A stretch of 64,000 nt of DNA from Blastocystis sp. Blastoise (taxonomy: Eukaryota > Protista > Bigyra: Opalinata), in the NCBI GenBank assembly GCA_039096225.1, contig JBBPEB010000023.1, forward strand, positions 434,001-498,000. Direction: 5' to 3'. How positions within the stretch are numbered: position 1 is the first letter of the stretch; each line of letters starts with the position of its first letter. A program made the translations under genes and the position numbers. The notes under the pieces were generated by a model. The model saw only the letters and a list, made by a program, of their open reading frames with translations. It made no database searches and was not told the DNA's origin. This document shows, piece after piece, positions 29,551-46,068 of this stretch.

Positions 29551-30744
29551 TTTATTATATATATATACGCATGGTTCATAAAAATTGTCATCAGTACAAT
29601 TATCTATAAGCATTTTCATAATTATATATAACGTCAAACCAAAGGCAAACATATCATACTATATAATAATAAACATATATAATAATAATAATAAATATAA
29701 TAATAATAATAAGCATGATAATAATAATAACTATAATACATTTAAAAAACATTTAAATTTTTCATTATAATATTCTGGTGGTACATATCTGGTTGAGTGT
29801 CCAGGTGGTTGTATAAGTGCACCATCTGCAGCATACAAAGAAATACCAAAATCAACTGTATATAATAATAATTATTATTTTTATTATTATTATTATTATT
29901 ATATTATTATTTTTATTATATATATATATATATATATACTTAATTTAAATCTTCCTTGATCTTTAGAATATACTATATTATCTGGTTTAAAATCCTATAT
30001 ATATAATAAACATAATAAATATAATAAATATAATAAATATAGTAAATATAATAATATACAGCCCAAATAACTTGGTGTTTCTGTAATGTACAAAGTGCTA
30101 ATAGAATTTGAATAATAAACTCCTTTATATGCTGACGAAACCATTCATGAATATCATAAAAATCTTTTTGGTTCTTATATTTATTACGAATATTCTCAGC
30201 TTTTTCTTTTTTTTCTTTGTTATATTTATTCAAAGCTATATCTATACAAAATTTTAATACATATATATATAAATAAATATAAATATATACTATTCTTAAT
30301 AATATCTATTAAAGAAATGTCACCCTTCTCCATATAAATCTAAAAGCAATAAAAAATAATAGAAATATTATTCTTTACAAAAAAATATACATATTTTTCT
30401 AAACCATCACGATATCCATAGAAATTAATAATATATGGAGAATAAAGAATAGCTAGAAAATATAGATCACGTTCGTATTGATTGTTTTCATATTCTTTAA
30501 CGATGATGTAATTATTTATTTCTTGCAAATAAAAAAAACTAATTATGTCTATTTTATTTTTTTCTTCTTGTGCTTCTCGTTGTTCTACTATCTCTAGTTT
30601 CTCCAGTTTTTCTACATCAAATATAAAGAATTATGATTACATAAGCATACCTAATTTTGGAGAATTATTTTCAAGATATGCTTTCACACAAGCAGTTGTC
30701 TTTAATACATCCAATATATTATGTTTCTTTGTATCCCTGTTCAT
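26800..30744 (-). CDS. Divergent Ser/Thr protein kinase + Asn/Pro/Thr repeat linker + C-terminal TLDc-like domain; about 14 exons
   Basis: Spliced motifs IIVKEY, SPYIINFYG, IYMEKG, VIWADFKPDN, FKLIDFG, STRYVPPEY, YDMFAFG. C-terminus WSILYYH...PYILIFHTK...IYFGFYTE...SVFLFTY resembles TLDc. Confidence 0.8.
28030..28830 (-). repeat. Coding tandem repeats (NNNYM and NIPSINTPT-type units)
   Basis: Visible in the DNA and in the translation of ORF 27492-28829. Confidence 0.9.
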
Positions 30745-32033
30745 TTATTTAAAAAATTATATGAAAAATAAAAATATAAATTTGATGTATATTGTTCTTT
30801 AAAATTATCTTGTTCAATAAAGATTTTTAGTAAAACCTCAAAAATACTACGATTATTTTAATTTTTTTGCTTAAAAACTAAAATAAAACAAGAAAATTAC
30901 TCGAGACTTACAAAAGAAACTAGGTTTCATAGAATTTAAAAAAAAATTATTCCTTTTTTAAAAAGTTCTACTAGATTTCGGTGTCTTACTTAATAAGCGT
31001 GCCATGCATTATATGAGATGAATAGAAATTTGTTTTATTTTCTCAAAACAATCACTAATGTGATTCGTGAATAACAGAATCACATAGAAACATACAGAAT
31101 ATATTTGAAATATATGTTTTGTAAAAAGTAGAATATGAAAACCAAGAAATATATGTTGAATGAATAGATATAATAAAATGTATATTCAAAATGAAGAAAA
31201 AGTTTTGACACAATTGTTATGGTGGTCTTTCACCTAATCTAGTTTCAAGCACTTATTTATGGAATTGGTTGTCATTCTTGATTGAAGAGATTTTGAAACT
31301 TTGAATGATAAAAAAACAATACAAATGTTTTTTAATAGAAAAATAAATATCTTTTTTGTGTACATAATAATAATTATGTAGATCAATAAATAGTATATAT
31401 CAATATATACATATATACAAGTAAATAATAAGTATACATTATTTAACATGAGTTTGATAGTATATATTCTTATTATTGTGATTTTATAATAGGTTACCTT
31501 TATGCTTATAAATACAAATATAGATATGAAATTATGATTTATATTATAATCAAAAATTTATTTAAAAAATGAAATCAAAGAAATGTAATAATTATTTGAA
31601 TGTATATAGATTGTGAATAGAAGAAAAGGATAAAGGATTATCATGTATATAATTAAATTGTTTAAAAAACGTTTTTAGAGCATATTTCTTTTTCAAATAA
31701 ATGTTTACAGAATTATATTCAATTAAAAACTTGCCGTGTTATTGTTATAAAGAATTCAATGAGAATAATATTATTTATATATATAAATTATTATCACATG
31801 ATTAATATAAATGATATTGAATTGTAGTTTTCTTTTTAAAAGAAAGAAATAATTAAAAAAATATATATATATAATTAAGAAACAGAATGTGATTGATATA
31901 TGTTAAAAGTATAAATCATTTTTATACAAGGGTGATAATAATAATTGTAACAATAATTTAAATTGAATAAAAATAGAAACATTAAAAAAGAACTAATAAT
32001 ATATTATTATATTAAAAAAAAATAGAATAAAAA

Positions 32034-32960
32034 TTATAATAATTTAGCTTTTACAAAACGTCTTTTAAGTGCATAAGTTTGTGAGATACTGATGGAAATT
32101 AATAAAATCTAGAAGAATATGTATATAGATATTATATTATATTATATAGTAGAGTATATAGTATATATTATTTAAAAAAATGTTATTTAACTAGATATAT
32201 ATATACAATAGTAATCACACTGAATAAAAAGATATTATAATCGATAGTAGCTGAAATATCACGAATTTGAGCTTCTCTTTCTTGAATGGTTCTAAAATAT
32301 ATATATATATATATATAATTGAGATAAATCATATAAATAAAATATAATTTAAAAAAAAAAAAAAAAAAAAAAGCAAAAAAAAAAAAAACAAATATATGTA
32401 TACTCAATAGTTTCATCAACTTCATAGAGTGAATCGACAATCCATTGCATTTGAACTTCAATTGGTTCTAAATTTTGAACTTGAGCAAGATGAGAATAAT
32501 CTTTAGCATCAATACCATAACGGAACTTTAAAGAAACTTCAGAATCTTGTGGTCCTATATTATATATATATATAATATTATTAATTAAAAAAAAATTAAG
32601 ATTAAAAAAATATATGAATATTGATCATATTAAAAATAAATATATATTTTTATAACAAATTCAGATTATTATACCTTTATTTTCAATGCAAACTTTATAT
32701 TCACCTTCAGTTTCAGTGTTAAATAAGAATCTACCTCTTCCAGTAACCTTATCAGTATAGATGACTTTCCCAGATGGATTCCAAACAGTAATAACACATG
32801 TCTTGACTTCATTCTCAGCGTAATATGTTCCTTTAGCTAAAACATTATCACTTAAATGTTCAGTAAAACATTTTGATTGAGTACCATGAATAATCATTCC
32901 AAATGCATTGGATCCAACAAATAGAAGACTGAGAGTAATTAAAATAAATGTCGATCTCAT
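32034..32960 (-). CDS. p24/emp24/gp25L (TMED) cargo receptor; 4 exons
   Basis: Signal peptide, GOLD domain (KCFTEHL...GRFLFNTETEGEYKVCIEN), GIDAKDYS, coiled coil, TM, tail LKRRFVKAKLL*. Confidence 0.92.
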
Positions 32961-33396
32961 TATTCAATATAAATAAATATATATAAGAATTAAAAAAATA
33001 ATTTAGTTCTTCCAGGGAAGAATCTATGAATCACGGGAAATTATTCTGTATTAGGTGAAAAAAGTGTTATTTTTCAAAATATATATCATGTATTATATTC
33101 TTATCGAATAAGAGTTTATTATGAATGGTAAAGGTAGTTTCCTTTTTCATTTTTATCCTATGCTGATCATGAAAGTTGTCCATTCATAAATTTTAACATT
33201 TTCGGTTAATTACTATATGATAACCGTGTGTATTGCCTTTTTTAGATTTTTTTTATTTGTATAGACTACATTAGAAAGCTGTTAGAAACAAAATAAAAGT
33301 TCTTAAACAAGAATAATAATATTTTTTAAAACATATTTTTAAAAATGTTTTGAAAATATAATATTTTTCATTCATAATAAGTAGAGAGTGTCAATA

Positions 33397-35036
33397 TTAT
33401 ATGAAATCATTATCAAAGTCATCTTCTTGTTGGTTTTCTAGAAAGAATATATATAAACTATTTAACAATAAAATTAAAGAAAACATACCTTTCCTTTTAT
33501 TTGTAAATTCGATAATAAGTTCTTTTGGAAAAGACTATATATATATCAAATTTTATTATTATATGAATATAATAAAAATACAGTTTTCTTTGTAATCATA
33601 GTAGCTTCATAATCCTCTTTTATTTGTTTTAATTGAAGGGCATCAATAGGTTCATGTGAAAATCTATATATTATATATTATATATATAATAGTATAGTAT
33701 ATAATATACATTATATAAAAATATATAATATAATATAATAGTATATAATATAATATTATATTATATATGATAATAAAGTTTAAAAATTAGATAATAAATT
33801 ATTTTATATATACCTGCAATTTGATCCATAACTACAGTTATTAAATAAATGAAAAAATTGACAAGGAAATGAATGTATATCATGTGAATATATACATGTA
33901 TCTAAAATTAGATATAGTTTAATAAATCATTCTTAATTGAAAAGAAATCATATATAATTATATAATAATTATATAATAATAATAATATAATGATAATAAT
34001 AATAATAAAAAATAATAATAATATAATAATAATATAATAAATATAAGAAAAGAAAAAAATGTTAAAAATCAAAAATATATTATATACTTTCTTGACAATT
34101 TCCATTTAAGAAATCATTACATAAAGGCTTTGGGATATTTGGATCATGAAAATAAGGGCAATCATTCTGTTTATATAATATATTTAGACTATATAAAAAT
34201 AATAATAAAGTAAATATACCTTTCGACACATTCCTAATTTATAGAATCGACAAAGAACAGATTTATTTGTTTCTTTTCTAATCTCAGCCTATGATACGAC
34301 ATTATTTTTATAGAATAGTAGTTAAAATACAGCACGAATAAAGGCATTTTGTAAATGTGTGCTATTTGAATTCCTTTTTTGATTATTTCTTAAGTTTTGA
34401 ACTTTATCCGCACTTTTCTCTTTCTCTACTAGTTTATCTAAAGGAGAATCTGTGATATTTGTTGATGATGAAAAAGAAAATAGTGATTTTGATCGATTTT
34501 CATTTTGTAAAGTCTGCTTATTATTCTTTAAGGTTGCTCTATCTATTTTCTGTAACGGTTTAGGTAGTTTTTCAAAATCATCTTCAGATATTGATTTCGT
34601 TTGAGAGTTTTGTGAAGTAAATATAGGCTTCGGATTACCTGGGAATGAAGGTATCTTCTGATTTACATAATCAGCCTTCAAAAAAGAGTTCAATTCTTGT
34701 TGATATGTTCTATCGGTTGAAGTCGTGCTGATCGTATTCAAATCTGTTTTTTCTGAATTGTTCTCAAACGGAAAACTTTCAACAATCTCTTTGATATCTG
34801 AAGGCTGTAATTGGTCGATCATTTTGAGAAGTTGGTCATAATACTCTTGAAGAACATCATTTGATACTGTTTTTGGTAACTCTATATTTTAAATAAATAA
34901 ATATATACTTATTCAAAAAACAAATATAAATAATATATAGTAAACAATAAAATGAGTTCATACCTGTTGTCGGTAAAGAATATCTTGGTTTTGGTAAATC
35001 ATTTGAATTTTTAATAGTATTGAATAAGTCGTTCAT
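33397..35036 (-). CDS. Triple CCCH zinc-finger protein (ZC3H4/6/8-like finger array); 8 exons
   Basis: Spliced fingers CRFYKLGMCRKNDCPYFH, CNDFLNGNCQENTCIYSH, CQFFHLFNNCSYGSNCRFSH; introns in phase. Confidence 0.85.
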
Positions 35037-35419
35037 TTATTTTAAGAATTTTTAGAATAAATCCTAAGAATTGAATTCATATCATAAGAAGAACAAAATT
35101 TATTGATATACGAATAATAAATAAGTTTAAAAAATACAAAAAAAAAGCAAGAAAGGTTCACAATTGAATTCTTCTTAAAAAGTATTTATGTTTTTATTGG
35201 GAATTGAAGAATCAAGACTGTCCACTCGAATAAGAAGCGTCATCAGAATGATCCAACCAATAACGTAGTTAGGATAAATGAGGGCCATTTGTATAGTGGT
35301 AAATAAAGGGGATGATAATCATTAAAACTTCTGGTTATAAAAGATAATGAGTGGTTTTTAAGAAAAATAGATTTTATTTTTTTGGCATTCATTTTCTTCC
35401 CAACTCTATTACTATAATC

Positions 35420-35978
35420 ATGGCTCACACGATTACTGCTGTCCAAGGTGAGTTTCTAGGTGTTGCTTAATGCTATAGATATATAGGATCTCTTCAAAAC
35501 CTTGTCAAGATTGAACGTGCTCTTTTATCTGTTTCTGATAAGACTGGTCTTGTTGAATTAGGTAAATTCTTACAAGAACATGGTGTAGAAATGCTCTCTA
35601 CTGGTGGTACTGCTAAGGCTCTCCGTGATGCTGGCCTTACTGTTAAGGATGTTTCTGAATACACTGGTGCTCCTGAAATGATGGATGGACGTGTTAAGAC
35701 TCTTCATCCTAAAGTATGTCTTTTTTTTATTCTTTATTTGTATATATAATTCGTGTATTTGAAAATATGTTGTTGTTATTATTATATTTATATATTCATT
35801 TTATACAGGTTCATGGTGGTATTCTTGCTGTAAGAGGTAATCCTAAACACGAACAAGATATGAAGGATAATGGTATTCAAAACATTGATTTAGTTGTTCT
35901 TAATCTCTATGCTTTTGAACAAACTGTTGCTAAGGTATTCTTTTGTTAATTATTATTGATTTATGATTGATAAATTTT

Positions 35979-36014
<36 letters not shown>

Positions 36015-36839
36015 TAGGGTTCTGATTTTGATACTTGTATTGAAAATATTGATATTGGTGGTCCTTCTATGCTTCGTTCTTCTGCTAAGAATCATCGTTC
36101 TGTTGTTATTTGTAGTAATCCTTCTCAATATGCTAGACTTATGTCTGAAGTATGTTTTTTTATTATTATTTTGTTTTATAATTTTGTTTTATTATTATTT
36201 TTTATTTTTTATTTTTTATTATTATTATATACTCTATATAGATGAGTGAAAATGAGGGTTGTACTACTTATGATTTCCGTAGACTTTGTGCTGCTCAAGC
36301 TTATGCTCTTTCTGCTGTATATATATATATATAATTATTATTATTTTTTTTTTTTTATATAAATTATTTTCATTATTTTATTAATAATTCTTTATATATA
36401 TATATATAATAAATAGAATTATGATTCTGCTATTTCTTCATGGTTTGCTAAACAAGTTTCTGAACCTACTGGTAAAGATATTATTGCTACTCGTCCTTAT
36501 GTACAAGTATGTGAACTTAAATATGGTTGTAATCCTCATCAAAAACCTGCTGGTCTCTATAGACATATGGGTATGTAGATATATAATATATTATTCAATT
36601 CATTATTATTATTATATTCAATTACTCTATATATTAATATACATAATTAATGTATATATATATATATATTATATACTCTATATGGGTGGTCAACTTCCTT
36701 TTAATATTGTTTATGGTCAACCTGGTTATATTAATTTATGTGATGCTTTAAATAGTTGGATGCTTGTTAAAGAAGTTGAACAATCATGTGGTATTGTTGC
36801 TGCTGCTTCCTTCAAACATGTCAGTCCTGCTGGTATGCT

Positions 36840-36883
<44 letters not shown>

Positions 36884-38167
36884 TTATTATTATTTTATTT
36901 TTATTTATCATGTAATATATCATCATTATTATTATTTTGTTATTTTATTTATTTTTATTTATATAAGAATAACAAATATATATATCTATATAGGTGCTGC
37001 TATTGGTACACCTTTAACTGATCTTGAAAAGCAAGCTTATGAAGTTAATGGTGACTTCTCTCCTGCTACTATTGCTTATATTAGAGCTCGTAATGCTGAT
37101 CCTATGAGTTCTTTTGGTGATTTCGCTGCTTGTTCAGGTACTGTTGATGTCTCTCTTGCTAAATTCTTAGCTAATACTGTATATATTCATATATATTAAT
37201 TATTATTATGTTCTAATTATATATTACTATATTATTATTATTATTTTTTTTTTTTTTTTTTTTTTTATTTATTTTATTATTTTAGATTTGTGATGGTATT
37301 ATTGCTAAGGGTTATGAACCAGAAGCTCTTGAAATCTTAAAGGGTAAGAAAGGTGGTAAATTTATTGTTCTTGAAGGTAATATTAATTATAAAGTTCCTG
37401 AAATGGAATTCAGAGAACTTCATGGTGCTATTCTTTCTCAAAAACATAATGATGCTCTTATTACTAAGAAAGATTTAGAAAATATTGTTACTAAGAATAA
37501 GAATATTCCTGAAGAAGCTATTAATGATTTAATTCTTGGTTGTATTTGTCTTAAATATACTCAAAGTAATAGTGTTGGTTATTCTCTTAATGGTCAAATG
37601 ATTGGTGTCGGTGCTGGTCAACAATCTAGAATTGACTGTGTTAAACTTGCTGTATATATATGTTATTATTTTATATATTTTATATTATATAATATATATA
37701 TTATATATACTATTCTTTATTTACAATAATTATAATAAAGTAAATAAATAAATATATATATATAGGCTCGTAAAGTTGCTTGTTGGTATTTACGTTTCCA
37801 CCCTAAGGTTCTTGGTCTTAAATTTAAGCCTACTGTAAAGAGACAACAACGTGTAAATGCTCGTGTTCGTTATATTGAAGGTGATTTCACTGAAATTGAA
37901 AAGAATCAATGGTTAGAAAACTTTGAAGAAATACCTCCTGAGTTTACTCAAGAAGATCGTACTTCTTTCTTAACTACTCTTAAGAATGTTTCTCTTACTT
38001 CTGATGCTTTCTTCCCCTTCCGTGATAATATTGATTGTGCCTCTAAATATGGTGTTAAATATATTGCTCAACCTGGTGGTTCTGTTCAAGATGATGGTGT
38101 TATCGTTGCTTGTGATGAATATGATATGGCTATGGCTTTTACTGGAATCCGTCTTTTCCATCATTAA
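35420..38167 (+). CDS. ATIC: Bifunctional AICAR transformylase / IMP cyclohydrolase; 10 exons (intron 6 has a non-AG acceptor)
   Basis: [96 protein letters not shown]. Confidence 0.97.
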
Positions 38168-38495
38168 ACATCTCCTCTTTTATAGTTCTCAAAATGTATA
38201 TAAAACCACATTTTTATTATTTCTCTTTTTTTAAAATTAGTTCTATCGTTTATTCATTTTTGTTTTGTTTTTTTTCTTTATTGAATTATATATTATTATT
38301 TTTATTCATTAATCAATCAATTATATCAAAACAAAACACTACAAATATGTTAATTAACGATATAGTATATAATTATTCAAAAGACAAAATCAAAAGGTAT
38401 TAAAATATCTATCTCACATGGATCAAAAGATATAAAGTAAGAATGAGAAATAAAAATCAGATTACAAATCTATAAGGAAATCTTAATTAAAGATT

Positions 38496-39269
38496 TTATT
38501 CTTCCTTTTCGTCATTTTTCTTACATAATTGAACACATTTCATTATAGAAGCACTGATGAATAAAAGAACCCAACTACCAACAACAGCTATATAAAAAAA
38601 TATATTATTTATATATAGATGAAATAAATAGATGAAATAAATAAATAAAAATATTACTAAATAAAAATATAAATAAATAAAAATATAAATAAATAAAATA
38701 TAAAATATAACTAAATAAAAATATATATATAGCAGAAACAGTTAAGATACCCCACCACATTCCGTTAATAGGAGCACAATTTTCAACAAAAGTATACTTT
38801 TCAGAATTACCCATGAAAGGTCTGACAGCTTCAAGTTGTTCATCAAAGAAAGTTTGTTGTAAAGTAGCATATTTTTCATTGAAATCATAAGCAAATCTCC
38901 AGTGGCAACGATCCCAAATAACTTCTTGTAAATAAGTCTATATATTTATAGATTCATTCATAATTAATTCAAATAAAAAAGAAGAAAAACTCATAAAATA
39001 AAAACAGTAACAAAGCATCAATATTCAAATATCTTTAAATTACAAATACATACAATACAAGTCTTTTCAGCTTCAGTATTAGTACATTCAGAAGAAATTT
39101 TAACATTAGCACACTTTAAAGGATATTGTTTTACAAATTCACGAGCCCAGATACCATATGTAGAATTAGTACTAACAATACCAGGACAAGCAGTGGAATA
39201 CTTTTCAATATTGCTTTCTTCAGCAAAGGCAATAGCAGCAATAAGTAAGAGAATAGCAAAAGATCTCAT
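38496..39269 (-). CDS. Small Cys-containing type-I membrane protein of unknown function; 3 exons
   Basis: Signal MRSFAILLLIAAIAFA; six ectodomain Cys; TM GMWWAVVGSWVLLFISASIM; tail KCVQLCKKNDEKEE*. Codon bias resembles ATIC. Confidence 0.8.
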
Positions 39270-40431
39270 ATTGGTCAATAATCTATATGAAAGAAACAAA
39301 GATTAATATGAAATCAATTCAATTTTTCTTTTATATACATGTTTCGTAATTTTAAACAAGAATTTTTCTAGGATATTTCTTCATTATTGATTAGAGAATT
39401 ATTTATAATCGTGATTATCTTTTATAGATTCTATGTAGTGATCAACTAAACTCTATGATTCTTATAAAATCTTAAACAAATGTATTCCTTCAGATGGCTT
39501 GGTTCTCATAAACTGTTTTTATTGGACAAAAACCACCCGAATTGTCATTTTTCTCTATGAATCCATTTCCTCACGATTATCGACCTTTTTATAGAGAAAA
39601 AAATAAAATTAGCAAAGATTCTTTTTTATCCTAGTCCGCCATTCATTTTGTCTACAAGAATAACATGGGAATATGTATAATCATAATAAAAAAATCAAAA
39701 TAACCAGATTATTGTTGTGTGGATTCATTGTTTTAAACAGTCTCTAATATCATCTTATATTCTATTACCAAATATATTCAGTTATCGTAATTAAATGACA
39801 AATTGAATAAAACAGTGATTCTAGTAATGATAACGATTACAACGATTGATTTGTCGTGTTATTCAATCTTTTACTTATTCTGTAAATACTACTTGAGATA
39901 TAAGATTTGCTAGGAATGTATTTTTAGTTATTCAAGTTAGTAGCTTTTCAATTCATTTTAATTTCAACTTGTAATATCACTCTCAATTAACTTTAAAGGT
40001 TCCAGTGTACACATGTAATTGTTTTTCACTATCAAAATTTGAAGATCAGTGAATACAATGATTATTGTTGACTCTCTAATGTGATATTAATATTGTTTTT
40101 GATATTCCACGTGTGATAGCTTTGATATATCTATGCACAAACGTAAAAAATTGTGTTTTGAAACATTTAAAAATGAGAATTCACTGTTTAAACAGGTAGA
40201 ATGCATATATTTTTTGATAATACATATATATGTTATAAATTGATATGTAAAATAAATAAAAAGCATTTTTTAATAATTTACAAAATAATTATTAACAATA
40301 AAGAACAATCGTATACAAAAAATAAAAATAAAAAAGTTTAAAATTTATATTATTTTAATTCCTTACATTGAATATCAATTAATCGTTTTTATTATTTACA
40401 AAAGATTTAACTGATAAGGAGAATATATATA

Positions 40432-41491
40432 ATGGAAATTGAAGTATGTAAATGTGATACATTTGTCAATTGTCATTTTATCTAGAGTTCTACACAACAA
40501 AATACGCATAAAGACACCTTAGAATGTCAACAAGCTTATTTATTAAATGGTCATTTAGGGAGTGTTACATGCATTAGGTTTTCTCCGAATGGCAAATATT
40601 TAGCTTCTTCATCTGCTGATGGAACTATAAAATTATGGGATACAGATAGTTGGATAGAGGTTGCACTTCTAGAAGGTCATCAAAGTGGTGTTAATCATAT
40701 ATGTTGGTCAAATGATAATCGATATTTAGCTTCTTGCTCTGATGATAAGACAGTACGACTTTGGGATGTTGAAAATCATATTTGTTTACGTGTTTTGGAA
40801 GAGATGAAAGAATATGCTTTTACGATGGCTTATCACCCACGAGTATATTATTATAATCATTCTTCTTACTCTATTTTTGTGGTATTACATATATTTTATT
40901 TTATTTTTTTGCAGATTTTTAAATATATATAATATTTTCATTAAATAATAAATTTAGATTCATATATGAATATATTTTGATTATAAATTATTATTCTTTA
41001 TTCTTTCTAGAATACTATATTAGCAACAGCTGGAGATGAATATATATATATATGGGAAACTCACACAGGCACGTGCTTATATAAGATTCAGGCACACAAT
41101 CATTGTATAAGTTCTCTGTCTTATAGCGCAGATGGTAGTATTTTAATTTCTTCATCTTTAGATGGATTAGTGTATATTTATAATGATATATATATAACTT
41201 TTATTTATTATGTTATCCTATATATATATATATTAGTCGTCTTTGGGATGTTAAAACTGGAAGTTGTTTACGTACTGTTTTAATTAAGAATAATGAAGTT
41301 CCTATGTATATATATATATATATTTATAGAATATATTCTCTTATTCATTCAATATATACATATATATATATATGTATAGATCTAATGCTACTCTTACTCC
41401 AAATTCAAAATATTTATTAATTTCTACAAAAAATAATATTATGTATTTATATAATATTTTTACAGACAAATGTATTGCTGAATATAAGGTA

Positions 41492-41544
<53 letters not shown>

Positions 41545-41757
41545 ATTTTTTTTCTCTATTCTTTTCATATATTATAGCATGAATATGCTAAACATAATAA
41601 TATATTATATATAGGGTCATCAAAATACATTATATTGTTCGACACCGTCTTTCTTAATTACACCTCAAAATCAATATATACTTACATCAGGTGGTATATA
41701 TATATATATACTTTTATTTATGTATTTATTTTTCATGATTAATACTATTTCTTTATT

Positions 41758-41802
<45 letters not shown>

Positions 41803-42049
41803 GAAGATTCTTCTGTTTATATTTTTAATGTTAAAAACTCTCTACCTGTTCAAAAAATAGATCTTAATAAAGGTATATATAGTTATTATTATTATTATAT
41901 TTCTTATACTTATTATACTTATTATACTTATTATTATAGATGCTGTGATTGGTACTGATTGTCACCCTTTTAAGCCTATATTTGTTTGTGGAACACTAGC
42001 TTCTGGAGGAAATATATTTATATATACATATAAAGAAATACAAGAATAA
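40432..42049 (+). CDS. WD40-repeat protein, WDR5/Swd3-like; 8 exons (missed by the ORF track)
   Basis: GHLGSVTCIRFSPNGKYLASSSADGTIKLWD, LEGHQSGVNHICWSNDNRYLASCSDDKTVRLWD, EYKGHQNTLYC, DAVIGTDCHP. Confidence 0.9.
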
Positions 42050-44022: not shown

Positions 44023-46068
44023 AATATGCTAATACATTATATATTATTTAATTTTTATTTAAATATAAATATTTAATAATTCATAATCATATCTTAAAGA
44101 AATAATATATATATATAGGATTATTTTATGTTTTCTGCTGTTACTCTTTCTTCTGTTATATCTATGAATAAAACACAAATCGATTCATCATTAGGAAGAA
44201 TACTGTTTAATTATGTTTCTAACAGAAATGATATAGATACAATAGATATCACAAATGCTTGTATATATATATATATTCTTTTTTATAAATGTGTTTATCA
44301 ATATGTTTATTAGTGTATTCTTGATTGATATTTTATAAAATTCTATTTTTATTCATTAAATATATATGTATATAAATAAAATATTTTCATATTTATTATA
44401 TATATTGATACTATAATATTTATAAATATCATTAAATATCTAAACTATTCTAATGTTCATTAATACATTCAATATATTATTAATGAATCACTATTGTTTC
44501 TCCAGTAATTGTGTTCCATCCTTCTCTTTTATCTGAAAAACAGTTTTATGACGTTCACAGACAAATGTCGTTAAATAATCTATTTCGGCTTCCAAATAAC
44601 CGCGGTTCTTGGTCTATTCATAACAGTCTTTATACTTATAGTATTTTTTTTTTGTTTCTTTTAATATATTATTTGTTTATAATGATTAAAGTATTATTTT
44701 ATATTTCTTTTTTATTAGCTCGAATGATAGATGATTCATACTATTTATATTCCCGTGGTTATTTTGATGATACTTTTGACTTTTCAGAAATATCATTGCT
44801 TCAACAATATATCAACAAAAATACAAGTATGAATATATATATATTTATGTAAATATATATTGCTATTATTGAATAGAGAGTATTTGTTTGTTTATGAATC
44901 TATATTATATATATACATAATAAAGTTATAAATAAATATATATATAGGATTGGGATTATATTTAAGTAGTTATTCCCAGGGTTATTTTGCATCCTCTGTT
45001 TCCTTTTATAAAGCAGTTCATTTTGACTATTGGAAATGGTATATATATATATATAGTTATTTATATACAATTCAAAAGGATAATATGGTTTTTATGTACA
45101 CTATCCTAATATACAAACGAATTTGATAAATTTTATTTGTTATTATTATTATTATATAAATAGGAACCATATATCAGAGAACGTGACAAACTACTTTTTG
45201 AATTCTTCGTTTCTTATTAAACCAAAGTATATAATATTTATTTATTTATAGTATATTTATTTATAATCTATTTATTTATAGTATATTTATTTATAATCTA
45301 TTTATTTATAATAAACACGTTATTCTTCTTTTTATAATAAATATGTATCATTTCTAGTGTGTTTAGAACAAGTAATGATATTTGTTCTTTATATTATCAT
45401 TATTATCAATCTCTCTTCTCTTCTTCTTCTTCTTATACTGTTATATATATCGATGCTCCTTGCATCATTCATATTCTTTCTAATATATCCTTTATATTAT
45501 TATTATTATTATGCATATATTGAAATATAACTTTTTTCATTTTCAATGATTTTGTTACTAATATAAAATGATATAATATAATATAATAAAAATAATATAT
45601 TAAAATATTAAAATATAATAAAATATAATAAAATATAATAAAATATAATAAAATATATTAAAATATAATAAAATATATTAAAATATATTAAAATATAATA
45701 AAATATAATAAAATATAATAGTATATAAACAATACCATTTCCTTTATATATTTACGCTTATCAATATACTTCTTCTAGTACTTTGTTTATTATTAGAGGT
45801 TTAAATCAATATAATTATAAATATACAAAACAAATGATTCTTAAAGGATTCACATTAATTAACGAGTATATATATATATATACATACTTTGAATATAAAT
45901 TTTATTAAATATATAATAAAATAAATATATCTTATTTATTAATATTTCTATAAATTTAATTTATTTAGATATATTCCTTTAAATAATAAAGGTTTGTCAT
46001 TATCTATATTTCAGAAGAAAACAAAACATTTCTTTAAGTCTCTTATAGAATCTTTATATACTTTGTAA
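42270..46068 (+). CDS. Type-II membrane protein with a degenerate glycosyltransferase-like domain and a degenerate SAM-methyltransferase-like domain; about 18 exons, including a probable micro-exon and a U12 intron
   Basis: N-terminal anchor MKNFSFVFLFIGIILSSVLY; FYGYIHGELL, DYFMF, IDITNALIVFH; C-terminal GLYLSSYSQGYFASSVSFYKAVH and YTVIYIDAP. Exons join in phase to TAA at 46066-46068. Confidence 0.6.
45485..45755 (+). other. U12-type (minor spliceosome) AT-AC intron
   Basis: 5' end ATATCCTTT; branch-like TTTCCTTTAT at 45738-45747; 3' end TTTAC. A phase-0 join restores the frame, and the upstream exon has no usable GT donor. Confidence 0.8.
45590..45720. repeat. 10-bp minisatellite AAATAT(A/T)ATA-type array inside the U12 intron
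   Basis: About 12 tandem copies seen directly. Confidence 0.9.

Follow-up and report, generated by a model that had tools for sequence, protein, structure and literature searches.

A GT-GG intron in the ATIC gene of Blastocystis sp. Blastoise, best explained by a transcript-templated overwrite of an ordinary acceptor

The ATIC gene and the ends of its sixth intron

The window analysed here is a stretch of 64,000 nucleotides (C32:434001-498000) of the 33.3-Mb, 34-contig assembly of Blastocystis sp. Blastoise. It is very AT-rich, with about 15-30% G+C in the profiled part at 30000-42000. The genome paper describes three tortoise Blastocystis isolates with 21-23% G+C and long introns, and names BioProject PRJNA1041441 for poly(A) RNA reads (PMC12129017). 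R9 sequencing chemistry was used for Rus-B, and R10 for Rus-S and Hermann's.

The ATIC/purH gene lies at 35420-38167 on the + strand and has ten exons (35420-35447, 35487-35713, 35809-35934, 36018-36149, 36242-36316, 36417-36570, 36686-36832, 36994-37178, 37286-37651 and 37766-38167), which form a clean open frame of 613 amino acids when intron 6 is taken as a GT-GG intron. Database searches were run exon by exon, and the joined model was used only for the frame check and for protein comparison. Analysis using Pfam models found PF01808 (AICARFT_IMPCHas) on exons 6, 7 and 9 and MGS (PF02142) on exon 2, and exon 7 matched residues 225-272 of the solved human and avian ATIC (PDB). The 613-aa product showed 58.7% identity over the full length with an environmental stramenopile ATIC (P0126) and 64% identity with the ATIC of Ectocarpus (P0413). 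There was one copy of ATIC in the assembly. We identified SAICAR synthase and two GARS genes of the purine pathway in the genome, so ATIC should be needed. Codon bias, expressed as CAI against RPL3, was 0.71 for ATIC, 0.65 for cytosolic HSP70 and 0.34-0.42 for proteasome genes; by this proxy ATIC fits a gene of the high-expression type. The upstream neighbour at 34322-35037 (- strand) encodes a low-complexity protein, is apparently lineage-specific and has very low codon bias (CAI 0.19); ATIC is flanked by poorly and strongly biased genes.

Eight of the nine ATIC introns have GT-AG ends, with acceptors such as TATATAG, and the odd one is intron 6. The donor is GTATGT in three introns (2, 4 and 6) and GTATAT in three. 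Exon 6 (36417-36570, +) ends with CTC TAT AGA CAT ATG G, whose last base opens a Gly codon (phase 1), and exon 7 (36686-36832, +) begins with GT GGT CAA CTT CCT and is translated as (G)...HVSPA(G). Intron 6 between them (36571-36685, +) is 115 nt long with 12% G+C; its 5' end reads GTATGTAG and its 3' end TACTCTATATGG.

The sequence-only reading had described this intron as GT-GG without an AG acceptor, and both direct reading of the sequence and enumeration of splice sites agree. Reading through from exon 6 meets the stop codon TAG at 36576-36578, and the conserved frame restarts at 36686. The only AG within the intron is at 36577, and none occurs between 36579 and 36753; over 36571-36800 the enumeration gave AG at 36577, 36754, 36771 and 36774 and no more. 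It had also been claimed that a downstream AG would cost a conserved block of 10 residues, which is true for every in-frame GT/GC-AG pair enumerated. The anomaly is confirmed as present in the assembly.

With the GG junction the spacing from NPHQ to GYIN is 22 residues, as in the closest full-length eukaryotic homologues. A TG acceptor three bases on (36687-36688), with one Gly fewer, is conceivable because short bacterial-type PurH mostly has 21 residues in this interval, but it is less likely than the GG junction.

Apart from its last bases, intron 6 looks like its sisters. The donor GTATGT (36571-36576, +) is the consensus of the sister introns, and the acceptor context TACTCTATATGG (36674-36685, +) shares 11 of 12 bases with the acceptor of intron 4, TACTCTATATAG (36230-36241, +). 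The deviant base is the G at 36684 (+), where a canonical acceptor has A, and it equals the base at -2 of exon 6 (36569). Judged as a U2-type intron, it has the lineage donor and a sister-like 3' context, and lacks the terminal AG.

The two junctions carry a direct repeat, ATATGGGT (ATATGG/GT, the stroke marking the junction), at 36565-36572 and 36680-36687 (+). As had been reported, both copies are exact, and a count found exactly two occurrences in the 64-kb window. As a bare 8-mer this is not above chance (two seen, 1.9 expected); as a junction repeat, its 8 nt stand against 0-3 nt at the other eight ATIC introns. A hand check found that sliding the intron along the repeat gives a canonical pair in no register, again in agreement with the earlier claim. 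The repeat is explained equally well as a by-product of a one-base overwrite and as a target-site duplication. The frame of exon 7 is also open backwards through all of intron 6, as part of a mechanical ORF of 152 aa (36421-36879); the last intron codons in this frame read L-Y-M-G, an echo of the L-Y-R-H-M-G at the end of exon 6, and CTCTAT...ATGGGT is found at both the exon 6 end and the intron 6 end.

Searches for relatives returned distant homologues. The word search with the 152-aa ORF holding exon 7 gave only fragments of at most 75% identity, and those inspected were short bacterial-type PurH. The representative-protein search with exon 10 gave no match above 67% identity, and the metagenome scan with exon 7 none above 73%. 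Word searches with P0126, including its parts aligned to single exons, returned other stramenopiles only. No ATIC protein from a sister isolate or derived from transcripts was found among the protein word-search and metagenome matches. Introns 2, 7 and 8 of ATIC lie at, or a few residues from, intron positions of Tribonema or Ectocarpus.

Non-canonical introns elsewhere in the genome

Odd intron ends are concentrated in genes whose codon bias is of the high-expression kind. The two RPS5 paralogues (on contigs C1 and C21), with 92.8% identity and indels inside their introns, carry identical GT-TG, GT-AA and GT-AT introns; intron 5 has T at -1 in both, which is no copy of the mRNA base. RPL17 has a CT-AC intron between GRIGP and YLSHP which is canonical in no register, and a further AT-AC intron with a 6-nt repeat. 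RPS3A (C19:568150-569330) has three introns, all of them non-canonical in the assembly (GT-TG with a 10-nt repeat; GG-AG; GT-GC or TG-AG); intron 3 contains a GT...AG pair one base off frame, and its deviant ends are unlike the mRNA. In RPS7, apparently single copy, intron 2 (C20:151780-152010, - strand) shows GT or AG in no register and no recognisable donor, the whole donor being equal to the far-exon sequence (GATCTC), and the 8-nt repeat ATGATCTC lies on either side.

The two RPL15 paralogues (C33:1213400-1214560 and C2:26660-27800) give the direction of the change. Their exons differ by 1 nt; GT-CG and GT-AA introns were present in both, and neither gene is fully canonical. Intron 2 follows an exon ending in CAAG; its own end is ATTATTATAG in the C2 copy and ATTATTCAAG in the C33 copy, the latter copying that exon end. 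Intron 3 starts with GTATGTTG in the C33 copy and GATGCTG in the C2 copy, where the downstream exon starts GATGCT; the C2 form is derivable from the C33 form by one deletion and one substitution. The change therefore runs from canonical to mRNA-like.

We counted the deviant bases by hand in the introns of RPS5, RPL17 and RPS3A, using the registers of minimal change from GT-AG, and 8 of 11 equal the far-exon base, against 1/3 expected (binomial p ~0.009). Junction repeats were 2-8 nt (mean 4.5, n=6) in non-canonical introns and 0-4 nt (mean 1.5, n=23) in canonical introns (Mann-Whitney p=0.001). Junctions of the proteasome (~9) and HSP70 (17) families, analysed with an automatic resolver and with hand checks where Pfam matches overran into introns, showed no odd ends among the resolvable introns, all of which have a GT-AG solution.

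Some genes had no intron in the matched domain: both RPL3 genes (C3:1632298 and C2:230369) and the five best-scoring HSP70 loci (C25:695280, C16:1451521, C16:1552281, C4:1827034 and C8:407314), which comprise three identical-scoring cytosolic-type copies and two more. This could fit frequent intron loss from highly expressed genes.

Two more introns may be recorded here on their own account. One of the four NAGLU paralogues (C4:202414-202668) has a 45-nt in-frame GT-AG intron made nearly all of TA repeats. In the window itself, the intron at about 45484-45756 has consensus U12-type ends (ATATCCTTT...AC): it starts with ATATCCTTTAT, has TTCCTTTAT eight bases before the terminal AC, and holds a long AAAATATAAT-type tandem repeat.

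Source of the deviant base

The odd G matches the spliced message, which points to an overwrite of the intron 6 end from the transcript, whether in the cell or through polishing of the assembly; most likely, then, 36684 was formerly A (TATATAG) and was overwritten from the spliced transcript. Four options had been offered by the sequence-only reading: tolerated non-AG splicing, repeat-guided excision, cDNA-mediated gene conversion, and polishing with spliced reads. The core common to the last two is supported by the 11 of 12 bases shared with intron 4, by the fit of six read-overhang lengths described below and by the direction of change in RPL15. Repeat-guided excision found no support of its own, since an overwrite would itself create the 8-nt repeat, and tolerated non-AG splicing is required as well if the G is real.

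We favour conversion in the cell, templated by cDNA, at a rough probability of 0.45; the G would be real DNA, and the intron would still be removed or be sheltered by another allele. Intron 6 would originally have been an ordinary major-type (U2) GT-AG intron, GTATGT...ACTCTATATAG. A reverse-transcribed spliced ATIC message would pair with the gene, the heteroduplex would reach a few intron bases past the exon 7 border, following the prior match ATAT-G, and repair would copy the cDNA base. The penultimate intron base would in this way take on the letter that the spliced transcript has there (exon 6 end ATATGG); TATATGG would result, with the 8-nt junction repeat as a side effect. With only one ATIC copy and a purine pathway in place, the cell must still produce the message: GG may serve as the 3' splice site, set by branch point and distance and not by AG, or a second, unconverted allele may supply the message.

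The deviant base equal to the far-exon base, in an intron end which is otherwise a normal acceptor, supports this proposal, and the same pattern is seen at the independent loci RPS5, RPL17, RPS3A and RPL15. The uneven changes between the RPL15 paralogues argue for it too, since rare mutational events need not hit both copies alike. The high-expression type of ATIC fits as well, none of the ~26 introns of the HSP70 and proteasome families being odd. In one model, introns are lost by recombination with reverse-transcribed spliced cDNA. The proposed conversion resembles that process in its spliced-transcript template and in favouring high-expression genes; here, in contrast, the intron is retained and conversion is limited to 1-6 bases at its ends. 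Two observations weigh against it. GT-AG is kept by most introns, a sign of constraint on the splice dinucleotides, and the donor of RPS7 intron 2 could hardly be used by a normal spliceosome, which favours an assembly fault or a sheltered allele.

It is known that polishing long-read assemblies with RNA-seq reads gives reference errors, when spliced overhangs are misaligned into introns. The true DNA would then be TATATAG, and spliced RNA short reads in a polishing round would have turned A into G: reads ending 2-7 bases past the joint of exons 6 and 7 would be placed in the intron with one mismatch. We regard this as a serious possibility, though we lean away from it. It requires no unusual biology, and it accounts for destroyed donors in essential single-copy genes such as RPS7. 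A deviant base equal to the mRNA base, the restriction to high-expression genes and the best overhang fit are all expected from it, and errors of this kind likewise hit ends with microhomology most and break public gene models. In a bwa-like model six overhang lengths back exactly A>G at -2, the top of the 18 ATIC intron ends (1-3 at the others); in ribosomal-protein genes the overhang support was k=1, 1, 2, 2, 2, 4 and 7 at changed ends and mostly 1 at unchanged ends. The genome paper gives the POLCA round only as "short-read polishing", with the read set unspecified, and states that RNA and DNA libraries were prepared together (PMC12129017). The same paper, however, describes the three Polypolish rounds as Illumina DNA polishing.

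The pattern of changes also differs from what such polishing should produce. A deterministic pile-up, blind to the RPL15 copies, should change both alike, but different ends were changed. Tracts of 2-6 bases and an indel (GATGCT, GATCTC, CAAG) would demand several rounds of minimally supported single-offset changes; neighbouring ends of the same transcripts with equal overhang fit stay intact: RPS5 intron 3 is altered and intron 4 is not, and RPS7 intron 2 is heavily altered beside a canonical intron 1. Changes with greater pending support were left unmade. Finally, some deviants are unlike the mRNA (RPS5 intron 5, RPS3A intron 3); overwriting by reads explains none of them, so some non-AG ends look real.

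In Daphnia, repair of staggered double-strand breaks leaves short direct repeats on both sides of new introns, and intron 6 could by analogy have been born with GG: AT-rich DNA would have entered ...CATATGGGTGGT..., duplicating 8 bp as a target site or at a staggered break. GT would come from the first ATATGGGT copy and GG from the second, and removal would need a tolerant spliceosome or depend on the repeat. Such an origin, which we think improbable, agrees with the exact repeat at both junctions, with the absence of the intron 6 position (phase 1, codon 248) from the ATIC genes of Ectocarpus, Tribonema and Chrysoparadoxa, and with RPS7 intron 2, where an 8-nt repeat likewise flanks an intron without splice signals. 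A direct repeat at both junctions and a lineage-specific position are also features of the new Daphnia introns and of introner elements, which have target-site duplications (PMC9860276), and repeat-flanked non-canonical introns exist in Amoebophrya (PMC7789003) and Euglena (PMC12501133). Daphnia introns and introners, in contrast, are GT-AG, and introners are multi-copy, while the assembly held no dispersed family related to intron 6, its matches on the two strands being diffuse and of AT-rich low complexity. Terminal inverted repeats were not convincing: TA-rich inverted matches were numerous, but none belonged to the ends in particular, and pairing of the ends was no better than in shuffles (fold z -0.57). 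The 3' end moreover is a normal acceptor context, one base from TATATAG, and the RPL15 repeats come from altered canonical ends of existing introns, not from inserts. An introner or MITE origin was rejected on the lack of a multi-copy family in the genome, and a structure bridging the intron ends on pairing that does not exceed shuffles.

A change without a template, be it a random error of base calling or a simple A>G mutation that crippled the acceptor, with ATIC decaying or the TG at 36687-36688 in use as a cryptic site, has a slightly smaller chance still in our judgement. The intron is indeed a single base apart from a canonical acceptor, and the shorter spacing of bacterial-type PurH would suit the cryptic TG. 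A random call error sits poorly with an assembly which was short-read polished, as stated in the genome paper (PMC12129017). We estimate a chance of about 0.5% that a random change gives both the exon base and the 8-nt match; the rest of ATIC is intact with strong codon bias, the pathway is present, and the closest full-length eukaryotic homologues share the 22-residue spacing of the GG model.

Introns of the minor-spliceosome (U12) class tolerate GT-GG, GT-AT and GT-TG ends, and their 3' site is picked by the distance from the branch site. Intron 6 resembles the non-canonical U12-type introns in its terminal dinucleotides and in having a 3' site set by something other than AG; GT-GG is listed among the ends of such introns in human and mouse (Sheth et al. 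2006, PMC1557818 Table 2). Blastocystis is rich in minor introns (PMC10639083), and the window holds the consensus example at 45484-45756. Intron 6 is nevertheless excluded from this class on the defining 5' splice-site and branch-site motifs: its 5' end is GTATGTAG in place of RTATCCTT, and it has no CCTT or TCCTTRAC-like branch site anywhere, where the class has TCCTTRAC 10-15 nt from the 3' end. The AT-AC registers 36565-36676 and 36559-36676 keep the frame, but were rejected as they carry no U12 motif.

Comparison with other lineages and significance

The non-canonical introns of Amoebophrya (PMC7789003), dinoflagellates and Euglena (PMC12501133) also have non-GT/AG ends, direct repeats at the borders and a slidable junction. 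In those lineages they are the majority, whereas here they are a small minority, with none in unbiased samples. Amoebophrya introns carry inverted repeats of 8-20 nt, and Euglena introns a CAG/CTG code with pairing of the ends; neither motif was found here, and in intron 6 the Euglena-type CAG/CTG motif is absent at +4 and at -6 to -8 (code as in PMC12501133). The introns of this genome, unlike those of Amoebophrya and Euglena, resemble ordinary GTATGT...TATAG introns that are one or a few bases off.

Term searches of the literature found no description of a partial conversion of intron edges, and a search for work on non-canonical splice sites in Blastocystis gave nothing on AG/GT-independent splicing or on rewriting of edges. 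A term search of the genome paper (PMC12129017) likewise gave no mention of transcript-templated intron-edge mutation or of AG/GT-free splicing. On balance, an ordinary acceptor overwritten from the transcript is the best explanation of the intron 6 end.

A wider statement would be that, in this Blastocystis lineage, partial cDNA-templated conversion returns spliced sequence to the intron edges of the same gene, eroding GT and AG in highly expressed genes, while the introns are still removed exactly. We consider it doubtful. If it were true, the splice dinucleotides would be dispensable where internal signals or junction repeats remain, and the lineage would show both a new mutational process and a relaxed or repeat-assisted choice of splice sites.

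Were the G at 36684 real, a single-copy gene for an essential enzyme would rely on a GG acceptor, and ATIC would join the ribosomal-protein introns with ends rewritten from mRNA; this would mean that intron edges undergo transcript-templated mutation and that the spliceosome can do without AG (or GT). Were it an artefact, systematic splice-site errors would run through the most highly expressed genes of the published tortoise Blastocystis assemblies, breaking gene models and misleading studies of intron evolution in the genus. Either way, the non-canonical introns of this genome are to be judged jointly, by one test.
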